Positions 40,601 through 47,000 of a stretch of DNA of 64,000 nt are shown here, one piece after another. Origin of the DNA: Haplodiscus bocki. Taxonomy: Eukaryota. Below the pieces are notes generated by a model, which was not told the origin of the DNA, made no database searches, and saw only the letters and a list, made by a program, of their open reading frames with translations. Where the stretch lies: NCBI GenBank assembly GCA_965655095.1, contig OZ296650.1:52514001-52578000 (forward strand). The letters are read 5' to 3'. The first letter of the stretch is position 1; each line of letters opens with the position of its first letter. The position numbers were made by a program, and so were the translations under genes.

Positions 40601-43331
40601 GAATGCATCGGCCTGTAGGTGAAATGTGCATAAGATTTGGACACGTCTTTTTGCAAGTACTTTTGATGCACAAAGTTATGGCTGCTAGAAGAACTACTGT
40701 TTAATGCATTTTGTTGTGCAAGAGAGCCGGCAAATGCGAAGGGCTGTAAGTTAGAAACATCCATTGACATTGACATCTTGTCTGCCACCTTGGGACGAGC
40801 CGAGGAAAACCTAGAAACAGAGGACTATGAATTCACGAGCTCCGTGCTAGAACCATACGCTTTCCATTAATAAGGGATGATAATGCAAATAAGGAAGCCA
40901 GGTTGCCGCCGATTTTGACTGAATAGCAAACTCATTGAATGACCGATTTAAGGGTGAAGAAAACTCAAAATTGACAGAAAAAAAAAGACAGAACTTAGAA
41001 TACGAATAAGGAAAGCGAGAACTCTTTCTGGCTTACTTACGCAAGCTCGGGAGAAAAATGCTCGGTGACAGCAATTGGATCGAAATTATATTTAATTTGC
41101 CCTGAACAATGCGTTGGGCCACTGAAAACGGTGAAATGTTGAAGCCTTGTTTGACGGCATAATCCGGAAAATGAAGTTGTCAAATCTCGATACAAGTTCA
41201 TTATTCGGTCTTAAATCGAAATTTCCTTACATGGGAAATTATGCAATATGAAGTACTCTTGTAACATTCCTGAGTTGAAACGGGTAATAGCTAAAGAGTA
41301 AAGTTACCTTATATCGAAAACTAAGCTATATCGAGAACATCTTACATCGAGATTCGACTGTAGAAATAATGCACAAAGTTACCTTGCAATAGGGGAAGGC
41401 AGACTCTTGTTAAAGCCCGGGGTGAGTTGGGCCGGGGTTGGTGTCAGTAGAATCTGTTCATACCAGCTAGCACTAGGGGGTTTGACAATTTTTCCCACAT
41501 TTACAGTTAAATCTCGTTGCTCGAAAGGGGTGCTGAACATCTGGGAAGGAATACACTCGTCTAACCACGACAGCATACTCGGATCACCTTCAGGACTGAG
41601 ACCACTTCTTAGAACATTCACACCTTTCAAAAGTAAAAGAAGCTACGTAACGTTCAAAAAATGTTTTGTTGATCAATTTCTCTGCAAACTGAATTGGGAA
41701 CAAAGAGATTAAATTGTCCGAAAACTGCACCACCTTTAAAGAAACTCCAGCATTACAAGATTTTCCGCTGAAATTTTTTTGCCTCAGAATCAATTATCAC
41801 ATCTCGCTGAATGTGATTGCAGCCCTTAACTAATCGATCGCATATTTGAACCCGAAAGTTCTGAGATACCGAAACTGGACAAAATTAACCTGAAACGAGA
41901 CAAGTAAATAACGATGAGATGATGATTAAGCTAACTTGCGAAAGCATCCATTGCTTTAATTTGTTCGCTTTCTGGTTCTTTGTCCAGTCCAGTGCCTGCA
42001 CATGAAAGCGCTTTGCTTTGGCAGAAGTCAAGACATGACTCGTACAGCAGACCATGAACGATGACTTGCATCAAACGATCAGTGGTAGCGGTGAAATCTT
42101 CTTGAGCCAAATTAGAGTCTGGTGGCAGAATCTTCTCGATCACTGGCTTCAACTAAAAAAAAAGGGAATTAAGTCATCAAAGACGAACACAATTTTTGTT
42201 CATCCCCTCCAGATGAAAAAATTGAGCATTTCATTTGGATCATTTTGTTGTTTGTTGACTTGCAAGGTTTCGAATAACAAAAATACGGTGTCTACTGAAG
42301 ACTTACATTTTCAAAGCATTCCAGTCTGGCAGAGCTAGGATTCCAACTTTTGAACTCCGGGTGATCTGACAATCTTTGAACTGTGAGCAGCAGACACAAA
42401 GAATTGTACTCTTCTCTTGAGGGACAAATTCTCTCCATGCTGTGCAGACATGCTACTACCTAAATTCAATTACACATTACTGCCAAACTCAGACAAGAAT
42501 CCATAGGCAAATAACTACAAGACTTCCAAAACCTTAATTCAAACGAGAAAATGAACGTGCGTCAAAAAATGAATATTTTAAAACTAATTATCTGAGGCAG
42601 GGAGAGTTGTCGCCAGTTTTTCATCAATTGTCAAAGTATTCATTTATTTTTACAAGTAGTCTTAAATTGGACACACCTCATCGATGTTAAAATCTTCCAG
42701 GAAAGAATTTGCTCCGTTAGTGACTCCCAGAATATCTTTCTCACTCTTCATGCACAGCATCTCCAGATACTTCTCGCGCAAAACCAGAAAGCGACAAAAG
42801 TTGTATCTGTCCAGACTAACAGACTCCAGAGGCTGAAAACAATATCAGATTGTAACAACAGACTTTCCAATCAAGTTTCAACTTTAAAATAACCGCTTAT
42901 AAATTTTCAGTTTAAGTTCGGAATACTTCAAAAACTCTTACGAATCTTATTATCCCCAGAAGATTTTTTCAATGACTACTCAGCACTTGAAAGAGCTCAA
43001 AAATTTCCAACTTAATAAATTCCATTTGAAAATAATAAGAATTGTGTTAACTCATTAAAGGTTAACCTACTTGTATAAACTGAAGCACATCATCCCACTG
43101 TCCATCAAGAATCAAATGTCTCAAAAACAAAACGTCATCAGAGAAAAGGCCATTCACTAGTCCACTTTCGCGTTCCAAAGCACGCATGGATATGTGGAAG
43201 CCTCGACTGCACAGAAAATCCAGAATGATCTTCACTACTTCTGCTTCCTTGAGATGCAGCGCATTTTTTGGTTCAAAAGAAAGAGCATTATTCTTGGGCA
43301 CGTGGGCTGATTCCACGGCTGGTTCCGGCAT
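34624..43331 (-). CDS. WDR47: WD repeat-containing protein 47 (LisH-CTLH + C-terminal WD40), 13 exons, about 995 aa: 43331-43071, 42832-42677, 42459-42307, 42152-41936, 41623-41383, 40810-40183, 40073-39819, 39062-38702, 38299-38117, 38042-37953, 37079-37020, 36908-36675, 34772-34624
   Basis: All introns are GT-AG and phase-consistent; total 2988 nt. Motifs: [46 protein letters not shown] (LisH/CTLH), [88 protein letters not shown]. The donor of exon 6 could be 40186 instead. Confidence 0.95.
34903..34990 (+). repeat. Short tandem duplication (about 47 bp x 2) in the last WDR47 intron
   Basis: gcgtcgaaaa(a)ctgcagactaa(t/a)caaagcgtc occurs twice. Confidence 0.8.
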
Positions 43332-44017: not shown

Positions 44018-47000
44018 TCAGATATCGAAATCTTCATCTTCATGAGTGCCTGATGATCCTGTTGCTGCTGTACACTGACCAACAATTGCACCTGTTAACT
44101 GTGCTGAGGCAGAACTCTCGGCTAGTTCTCTCTGTAAAACATCCATTTCCTCCGCTGAACATTCCATTTCCATTTGTTTACGAGCCTAAATCAACCAAAA
44201 CCGAATGAAGCCAAATCATCGAGCCATTCCAGAAACAAATTGTGCGACACGAACAAGAACTAACTAAGAAGAAACTTCCTTTGACTAAAGAAATTCATGC
44301 GGCTCCAAAACATTTGTTACTGAAGTGGAAGCGATAATTGAAAGCGACAAGGCTAAACGCTGTCAGGACTATTCGTTTTATGCCATTTCAACCGTTCACA
44401 CCTTCAACCGCTTGCCTTTTTGATCGCCTGCTATTTCAACCGCTTCCATTATCGATTAATCAATTAATTACAGAAACTAAGTGTAAAATAAATTAATGCT
44501 TTTTAAACGTAATATTTAAAGCAAGGTTTGATTATGAAAGCGTCGTAGATACTGGATCCACCAATTAACACGCCGCTAATAGGAAACTTACACAGTTTGC
44601 ACCTACTCCTAATCCAAAATTGTATGAAAATATTCAGCCATTCAGCATTACAATAGCAGCAACTACCACATATTACAAACTCAATTTCAAATTACAGAAT
44701 CAAACCGAGACGGTAAAAGTGCAGTGCACGACGGTCACTCATATAACCAGAAACAAACAACTATAAACTGTATCCAATTGCGTTGCACAAAATATTATAA
44801 GTTAAAATGTCCCACAATCTTGAAAACTTGAAACGAAACTCATTGAAACAAAAGGTACCCATAATCGCGACCGCGACCCCCGCAAGGGTAAAGCGAAAGA
44901 AGTAATCAATCAGATCAAAAGAATATTCAACACCAACTGTGGCGATTGCCGATGAAATATCCGATATTTCCGATGATTATGCAGTTCAACTTACAATGCC
45001 CAGAAAAGACAACCTGTTGTTGCCAGCAGTCTCTCGAAAAAGATAAAAGGAGATGAATCTTCAAAAAGCTGCTCCGCCTGATCGACATTTTCATGTCATT
45101 GACGAGTTTGCTTCCTTCCTTCTACAAGAGAGTGGGGAAGATGATAATGACCGAATTCTAGTATTTGGAGATGCAACAATGAAGAACTTACTAAATTTGT
45201 CGAATATTTGGTTGATGGAACTTTTAAATTGTCACGAGAAATCTTCTATGAAACTTACAGAAATGATGTAGGGTTGCGCGGTATTGCTCCACCTTGTGTA
45301 CATGCGCTGCTACCGAACAAAACAGAAAAAACCCTTTAATATAATGATTGAATTGCTGAATGAGAAACGAGCCCCCGCCTATTTAAAGGCATCTTTTGAG
45401 CTGGTTATTGAAGAAATAACAGACGTTATCGAAAAAGAACAGTTCGGAGGAAGTGTCATCAAGAAAATGGATGAACTTGCAAAATATTTCAAAAGTACTT
45501 ATATGGAAAACCCGATTTTAAATAAAAAGCCACCTTTCCCAATCGAAATGTGGAACCAGTATGACGCAGCCGGAGAGGGGGTAGCCCGGACAACAAATAG
45601 CGTAGAAGGCTGGCGTTTCGGACTGCAGGCGTAATTTAGTGGTTCCACGCCGAAAATTTGTTTGCTCTCACGAAACTTCAAAAAAAAGATTCGAAAATGC
45701 AGAAGTTTAAATATATTCAAGAGTCTGCCGGATTATTGTGCTCCAAGCGCCTCCGGTAAGAAAAAATTGAAAAATATGCAAATAATCCAGAGCACTTATG
45801 AGTTCCAAAATGCTGTGCCACATCTTGGAGCAAAAGTAAAATTCAGATAAAAAAACTTATATAGTTTTTGGTAGGTTTTGTTTCTTTTATTTTGCTGTAA
45901 TTATTCATTTTTTGTCTTCTGAGGCAAATTGAGTTTATGGTTTGTTTGCAGAGAAGGAAATATTAAGCTGATGGGATATTCGATTTTTTTTATCGTAACG
46001 CCTCCTTGCAGCCTCCCGGAGTGCGTCTCACAACATTAACATGACTGTCTGTTCAGTTTAATCCAAGAGACACTGTCACCTCTGAGATCGCAAGTACGTT
46101 GACTAAGGGCTGGCTGACCCTTTAGAAAAATGTTCAAAGCCGGTGACGCGAAATCAAAATCCATTCAAGTTTGTTGTACTAGTCAGATGCGAAGTGCATT
46201 TGATTTCTTTCTGGTGAAGTTCGGACACATCACTTTCAAGTTTGGTATACATGGCAGTTTGTCCAATTTGACCCTCAAAAATTACGTAACATTGTCTTAT
46301 TGATAACAATTGATTCCTTAATTACTTCAATTGTTTTCGAGCGTCTTGAAAAAATTGAATAACCCGGAATTTAATGAAATAGGTCGGATTTGCGGCGGTC
46401 GAATTTGCAAGCGGTTGAGTCTGTGAACGGCTGAAAGTTTGAACGGTCGAAATTGCAATTGAAATGGCGTAGGACGAAATGACAAGAAACCGGCTAAACA
46501 TACATAATAAACATTGTTCAAATCATCATGTCGGCTTCCCCCAAAATCACGAAATCAGATCGAAACAACCACGCTAATTAATAAATGAAACCGTATAAAC
46601 GTTAAAAGTAGTCAAAATAAGTTGAAGTTCACTTTATTACTCAATTGATACTGATATTAGGAGCTGATTCGAGACATTACAACTTACAATGAAATTCCTC
46701 TCTTCATTTAGATTACCCTGCAAAAAATCACTATCACGTTAGCATTCACTTCGCAAAAGCTCTTATCTGGAATTTTTCGAAAACGTGCACCAAATTTTAT
46801 GTCAAAATCAAGTTATCGAGCATCTATATCGAACATAGAGGTGAAGCGGTTCTTCCCAATATATTCGGGAATGTCAGCTGAGATCACGGATCCCAAAATA
46901 CATCTAAAACTATGATCGGATGTGTGATTACCACTCTTAGCAATACTATACCAGCTGTCAATCAAGAGTTCTTTCAAAAAATAGGTCAAATCGAAACAAG

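Follow-up and report, generated by a model that had tools for sequence, protein, structure and literature searches.

Are two functionally unrelated animal genes that stand head to tail, a few hundred nucleotides apart, copied into one RNA, or does each have a transcript of its own? The question is raised by DR1 (NC2-beta) and WDR47, two separate, conserved housekeeping genes of an acoel worm, both on the minus strand of a 64,000-nucleotide (nt) stretch of DNA (the whole stretch is called the window here, and positions are counted from its first letter). The DR1 stop codon (TGA, 44020-44018) and the WDR47 ATG (43331-43329) are separated by a gap of 686 nt (44017-43332). The original prediction, made from the sequence of the window, had given this distance and the common strand, both of which hold on re-reading, and had taken the genes to be splice-linked through two GT-AG introns in the gap, either as an operon resolved by spliced-leader (SL) trans-splicing or as a bicistronic mRNA. 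Here, we report a comparison of the locus in five acoel species, on which we tentatively favor separate DR1 and WDR47 mRNAs, with WDR47 read from its own start packed behind DR1; one of the two proposed introns proves credible, as an intron conserved within the leader of WDR47.

The predicted leader of WDR47 in five acoels

Relatives were found by word searches with exon 1 of each gene, followed by contig look-ups; vertebrate-like WDR47 fragment matches (P0007 to P0012), some possibly of human origin, were left out of the comparison. Species A comprises the window and contig L007 (99.9% identical), with DR1 followed by WDR47 at a gap of 0.69 kb. Species B (L001; 68% identical in DR1, 88% in WDR47 exon 1) has the two genes in the same order on the same strand, 4.86 kb apart, the gap holding repeated DNA, among it a 185-nt tandem array. 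In species C (L002 and L004 on one contig, L003 near-identical; DR1 44% identical), a single strand carries the DR1 stop, 6.1 kb of DNA, a multi-exon Tudor-domain gene, 1.27 kb of DNA, and WDR47. In species D (L005/L006 and L009; WDR47 exon 1 70% identical), the Tudor gene stops 0.62 kb ahead of the WDR47 ATG, and the 19 kb upstream contain a Maverick insertion and no DR1. Species E, close to D, is an 841-nt Tara Oceans metagenome scaffold (L008) with 411 nt available upstream of the ATG; it places planktonic acoel DNA, carrying the WDR47 5′ region, in Tara samples. Across species A to D, the upstream neighbor of WDR47 is co-oriented and 0.6 to 4.9 kb away. Gene order in relatives, which the original prediction had named as a check, bears out the DR1-WDR47 linkage and orientation, in C with the Tudor gene between; both appear, from this distribution, to be old.

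The gap holds the two GT-AG candidates exactly where they had been placed (GT 43993-43992 with AG 43912-43911; GT 43748-43747 with AG 43491-43490). Both had been called well formed, a quality that proves to be common by chance. With a candidate pair defined as GGT and, 60 to 300 nt further on, a YAG that has 8 or more of 12 pyrimidines, two or more pairs occur in 79 to 85% of 686-nt segments of the window, and the eight pairs of the spacer are equaled or exceeded in 29 to 38% of them. By themselves, two GT-AG pairs are not above chance and carry no meaning.

Comparison with the other species separates the two candidates. For the longer one, a YAG acceptor (at least six of eight pyrimidines) lies 158 nt before the WDR47 ATG in A (43490), and at −171 in B, −175 in C, −161 in D, and −149 in E. 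At the background acceptor density of 0.005 per nt, five out of five would fall in a 27-nt interval with a chance of 3.5e-5, which correction for the choice of interval raises to about 3e-4. Upstream of this acceptor, a donor-like GT stands at 259 nt in A (43748), 254 nt in B, 215 nt in C, 244 nt in D, and 261 nt in E, and the donor hexamer is GTTAAT in A, B, and D; for the pre-specified donor 43748, the corresponding match in B has an empirical p of about 0.013. The donor pattern was partly chosen after the sequences had been seen, and these conservation figures are thus generous. With acceptor position and donor-like GT kept in all five species, 43748-43490 is a credible conserved intron of the WDR47 leader, and we infer that its splice sites are used.

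The shorter candidate (43993-43911, 83 nt) fares differently. Its acceptor is not kept in B, which has TGG where A has CAG/AG before a similar ATGCATTNACC motif; the intron as a whole has no counterpart there, and spacer matches outside the block next to WDR47 are at control level. More generally, the species compared do not agree in the acceptors found upstream of the leader donor. The 5′ end of the leader exon would be 43910 only if the 43911 acceptor is used; otherwise, transcription would start somewhere in 44017-43750.

Between the conserved acceptor and the WDR47 ATG, two further features recur. The sole alignable non-coding DNA of the A and B spacers is a block of about 85 nt before the ATG (43414-43332), which is not U-rich and holds a CCAAT-like motif, perfect in B; the spacers as wholes give a local alignment not above shuffles and 12-mer matches at control level (30 vs 26). 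The second feature is an upstream ATG (uATG) that opens a short upstream open reading frame (uORF), found at −106 in A and at −118/−107 in B; C, D, and E all have it at exactly −112, within AAAATG. The chance product is 2.9e-4, which rises to about 5e-3 when corrected. WDR47 also has an ATGTAG before its ATG, at −76 and −81 (window 43407-43402), similar to an AUGUGA start-stop mini-uORF in the DR1 leader, and the start-stop mini-uORFs of the two genes may be translational control elements. Two other motifs were rejected: TATAAAA at 43424, which might have been a TATA box or a variant poly(A) signal, coincides with the uORF end and reads TGAAAA in B; the AG found 2 to 13 nt before the WDR47 ATG, considered as an SL site, is part of GAG or AAG (poor acceptors) in three of five species.

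These motifs might instead be other conserved elements or coincidence, with WDR47 transcribed without a leader intron from a start 112 to 250 nt before its ATG, in a plain tandem behind DR1. We hold this to be unlikely: an acceptor shared by five of five species, the recurrence of the pre-specified GTTAAT in B (254 nt) and D (244 nt), and the match in B all speak against it, and have to be set against the partly retrospective donor pattern, the nonsignificant A-B spacer alignment, and uATGs that are at or above random expectation, and so not depleted, in the 158-nt leader.

One transcript or two

The acceptor, the donor-like GT, and the uORF hold their positions relative to the WDR47 ATG, whether DR1 lies upstream at 0.69 or 4.86 kb or the Tudor gene at 1.27 or 0.62 kb, which counts for separate mRNAs. 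Because the intron keeps its place with DR1 4.4 kb off or with another neighbor, it would be a WDR47 leader intron and not a DR1-WDR47 link. The proposed splice link between the genes is accordingly not borne out: one of its introns is not kept, and the other stays with WDR47 whatever lies upstream. In B, 4.4 kb separate the DR1 stop from the leader donor, and an ATTAAA stands at +298 after that stop (+211 in C), which favors a local WDR47 start in this species. The confinement of alignable A-B non-coding DNA to the 85 nt before the ATG, with its CCAAT-like motif, likewise counts for separate mRNAs. Genes downstream in nematode and tunicate operons typically have short leaders, unlike the long intron- and uATG-bearing leader predicted for WDR47.

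If the intron is real, the leader exon of WDR47 starts within the 269 nt between the DR1 stop and the leader donor, and the DR1 and WDR47 transcription units then abut or overlap; in D, the leader donor is 214 nt behind the Tudor stop (L005). As we picture it, cleavage and polyadenylation would end the DR1 RNA early in the gap, and WDR47 RNA would begin in that same early part from its own start site and possibly then be given a spliced leader. The tight spacing would reflect a gene-dense patch free of transposable elements (TEs), with no Tudor gene detected between, unlike in other acoels. We infer the RNA ends and starts in the gap, and the separateness of the two mRNAs, from genomic sequences compared among species.

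Several results weigh against separate mRNAs. No promoter could be shown, the body of the leader exon has no sequence conservation between A and B, and the 269 nt (window) and 214 nt (L005) from upstream stop to leader donor leave little room for a 3′ untranslated region (3′UTR) plus a promoter. Neither AATAAA nor ATTAAA occurs in the spacer (44017-43332), where the sole poly(A) variant (TATAAA, 43424) is downstream of the conserved acceptor. A canonical signal does precede the acceptor in co-oriented pairs of the relatives, by 77 nt in the Tudor-WDR47 pair of L005 and by 83 nt in the TMEM55-DR1 pair of L001, a spacing of the kind seen in classical operons. The linkage and orientation of the two genes have survived deep divergence (DR1 only 44% identical), as if the downstream gene depended on the upstream promoter. 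Finally, trans-splicing is published for the acoel lineage, in Symsagittifera roscoffensis, at 30.2% of genes, with a 32-nt SL and with operons not mentioned (PMC9911081).

Some of these points lend weight to an SL-resolved operon, in which one pre-mRNA would run from the DR1 promoter through WDR47, DR1 would be cleaved and polyadenylated in the gap, and the SL would be added to WDR47 at 43911 or 43490. We consider this possible, if on the doubtful side. The exact 32-nt S. roscoffensis SL heads a LINE-like element in L001 (3848-3879, minus strand), with PHD, endonuclease, and reverse transcriptase (RT) ORFs downstream, and strong acceptors are conserved before both DR1 and WDR47. The poly(A) signals at 77 nt (AATAAA, L005) and 83 nt (TMEM55 AATAAA, L001) before acceptors, the distances of at most 269 and 214 nt from upstream stop to leader donor, and the co-orientation of DR1-(Tudor)-WDR47 in three species agree with such a unit. 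Repeats inflate the operon spacers of Macrostomum lignano, for which the criterion is a repeat-adjusted gap of at most 1 kb (PMC8629364). The 4.86-kb spacer of L001 holds few poly(A) hexamers on the sense strand (3 vs 9.8 expected), but as a mark of read-through this depletion lacks a valid positive control, since introns are undepleted.

Other findings count against the operon. No SL copy was found in the window within 3 mismatches, the best ungapped match (21/33) being at chance level, and no canonical poly(A) signal lies upstream of either acceptor in the window gap. The gaps in the relatives are wide, at 4.86 kb with repeats in L001 and 6.1 kb between DR1 and Tudor in L002. A cis intron with its acceptor at 43490 would bar SL addition at that site, and the conserved upstream donor argues for just such a cis partner; the alternative acceptor at 43911 is not conserved in B. 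The WDR47 leader is long and rich in uATGs, and no report of operons in acoels or other Xenacoelomorpha was found in the searchable literature. A broader form of the idea, that DR1-(Tudor)-WDR47 is an ancestral acoel operon driven by a promoter upstream of DR1, resolved by the SL and kept linked for that reason, seems to us conceivable at a similar, rather doubtful, level.

Far less probable is a mature read-through mRNA, in which the DR1 poly(A) site would be skipped, the gap cis-spliced (43993-43911 and/or 43748-43490), and both ORFs carried on one bicistronic molecule. Both GT-AG pairs exist and the second is conserved, and the leader donor lies at most 269 nt from the DR1 stop, about the 3′UTR length suggested by the ATTAAA of the orthologues (+298, +211). 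The first intron, however, is without comparative backing and of a quality common by chance; the leader belongs to WDR47, its donor being 4.4 kb past the DR1 stop in L001 and behind another gene in L004 and L005; and the second ORF would be preceded by 209 codons and by at least about 340 nt of leader with several uATGs, so that scanning ribosomes would hardly translate it. Separate mRNAs thus remain our preferred, tentative reading.

Gene models, the DR1 5′ end, and surroundings

Positions of the features are collected in Table 1. The histone-fold gene was identified as DR1 by its match to Pfam CBFD_NFYB_HMF (PF00808), by an acidic C-terminus (...HEDEDFDI), and by its sole solved-structure match, PDB 1JFI chain B (NC2 beta, E=1e-13); its exon joint reads ...QEALIEE/ARKQMEME..., in agreement with species B and C. 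WDR47 was identified through successive exons that match LisH (PF17814), WDR47_COR (PF25602), and WD40 (PF00400).

Table 1. Features of the DR1-WDR47 locus, in window coordinates
Feature	Position	Strand	Details
Polypyrimidine tract and CAG acceptor, 38 nt before DR1 ATG	52704..52720	-	Candidate SL trans-splice site or 5′UTR-intron acceptor
AUGUGA start-stop mini-uORF in DR1 leader	52690..52695	-	AATGTGA common to window and L001 (about 9978-9983)
DR1/NC2-beta coding exon 1, histone fold	52205..52666	-	PF00808; 1JFI_B; orthologues 68% and 44% identical
DR1 intron, 8 kb, repeats and TE ORFs	44186..52204	-	Donor GAG/GTTTGT, acceptor tttag/GCTCGT
DR1 last coding exon, including stop TGA 44020-44018	44018..44185	-	C-terminus ...EDEDFDI kept in B and C
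83-nt GT-AG candidate, unsupported	43911..43993	-	Coordinates correct; no comparative backing
Putative non-coding WDR47 leader exon	43749..43910	-	3′ end 43749 placed by the conserved donor
Candidate WDR47 leader intron, 259 nt	43490..43748	-	Donor GAG/GTTAAT, acceptor ttcttgCAG; positions conserved in five species
Predicted 5′UTR part of WDR47 first coding exon	43332..43489	-	158 nt; block 43414-43332 conserved with B
Five-codon uORF, ATG 43437 to TAA 43420	43420..43437	-	uATG position kept in relatives
WDR47 coding exon 1 (LisH)	43071..43331	-	Pfam LisH_TPL; 88% identity to B, 70% to C and D
Rest of WDR47: exons and introns (COR region, middle region, WD40 repeats)	34624..43070	-	ORFs, Pfam; orthologous exons in L003 to L006

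Upstream of DR1, the acceptor ttcttttCAG has its AG at 52705-52704, with the DR1 ATG at 52666. TTTCAG stands in register in B (L001) and 10 nt before the likely DR1 ATG in C (L002). The acceptor that had been noticed just upstream of the DR1 ATG is therefore real and kept in three species, its end being 52704 and the ATG 52666. These features make DR1 a good candidate for a trans-spliced gene. In B (L001 8600-10016), DR1 follows a co-oriented TMEM55-like gene (PF09788), whose end is 867 nt from the DR1 ATG; TMEM55 was not found anywhere in the 64-kb window, where the hexamer aligned to the AATAAA of B is degraded (AATAGC).

DR1 and WDR47 are the only host genes detected across the 64 kb. The window flanks, about 11 kb upstream and 34 kb downstream, hold only TE-like ORFs (LINE RT, Tc1-like), and the spacer is single copy, much as the original prediction had described TE debris elsewhere and a spacer free of it. 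One DNA contig per run spans 42000-44749 at a depth equal to that of the flanks (four public runs, one study); because these contigs cross in one piece at flank depth, the spacer is taken as single-copy DNA. All four of these runs look like genomic DNA: their contigs are collinear through introns and have no joints. Within the DR1 intron, 44328-44520 and 44716-44900 are high-copy repeats, with summed contig depth in the thousands against about 7 to 46 in the flanks, and contigs break or rearrange at 44386-44423. The single ORF of the spacer has no Pfam match, and Rfam gave no match in the window, L001, or L002. Positions 13501-13700 of the window are 200 N (assembly gap or masked).

Two species (L004 1337-8717; L005 5346-9381) have the Tudor gene as the immediate, co-oriented upstream neighbor of WDR47, and this gene may have been lost, moved, or inserted in one lineage. 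A Tudor remnant in the A and B spacers was rejected, as the frames are full of stops and tblastn finds nothing; ACTTATGAGG, common to the spacer and L005 and considered as a Tudor trace, is not present in L004. The insertion upstream of Tudor in D (L009 8197-17838) is Maverick/Polinton-like, with co-oriented ORFs and a DNA_pol_B_2 match. In C, a near-perfect MITE-like inverted repeat, about 47 nt long (CACAGGAAGCC...GGTTAAA with its complement), lies at about 9330-9575 of L004, just upstream of the putative leader donor.

Known systems and significance

The locus resembles the SL-resolved operons of nematodes, Macrostomum lignano, Schistosoma, tunicates, and chaetognaths in that co-oriented, unrelated housekeeping genes lie across a short stop-to-ATG gap with conserved linkage, in a lineage for which an SL is published and with strong 3′ splice sites upstream of start codons. 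Like the operons of M. lignano (PMC8629364), the acoel relatives have repeat-inflated spacers. Unlike SL-resolved operons, the 686-nt gap holds a putative conserved cis intron and a long uORF-bearing leader, and it is without a canonical poly(A) signal and without the usual layout, in which the poly(A) signal precedes the acceptor by about 100 nt. Operon spacers measure about 100 bp in C. elegans, as little as about 1 bp in Ciona, 31 to 57 bp (median) in Oikopleura, and about 500 bp in Trichuris (PMC7986045); operons have been called at spacers below 250 bp in chaetognaths (PMC12460157) and at no more than 1 kb, once repeats are subtracted, in M. lignano (PMC8629364). By the M. lignano criterion, a gap of 686 nt would define an operon if WDR47 is trans-spliced; by the stricter ones, it would not.

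Two other kinds of arrangement offer likenesses. One is the SL trans-spliced monocistronic gene of S. roscoffensis, also an acoel (PMC9911081): the TTTCAG acceptor 10 to 38 nt before the DR1 ATG has the look expected of such a gene. The other is the closely set or overlapping tandem pair, or conjoined (read-through) gene, of animals, in which the first exon of the downstream gene lies within or right behind the upstream 3′UTR; here, too, the leader donor could capture read-through. Such arrangements are usually lineage-specific, and unlike conjoined genes, the candidate leader intron is kept with WDR47 across five species with differing upstream neighbors.

Acoels hold a much-debated position near the base of Bilateria, and SL trans-splicing was reported for them only in 2022. 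If DR1 and WDR47 are co-transcribed, acoels would join nematodes, flatworms, tunicates, and chaetognaths as operon-bearing animals, which would bear on how often operons arise once trans-splicing exists; an ancestral acoel operon, if true, would be the first evidence of operons in Xenacoelomorpha. If the genes are not co-transcribed, the locus would be a clean case of a conserved 5′-leader intron and uORFs packed behind the stop codon of another gene, a layout that annotators of TE-rich acoel genomes must recognize if such genes are not to be fused.

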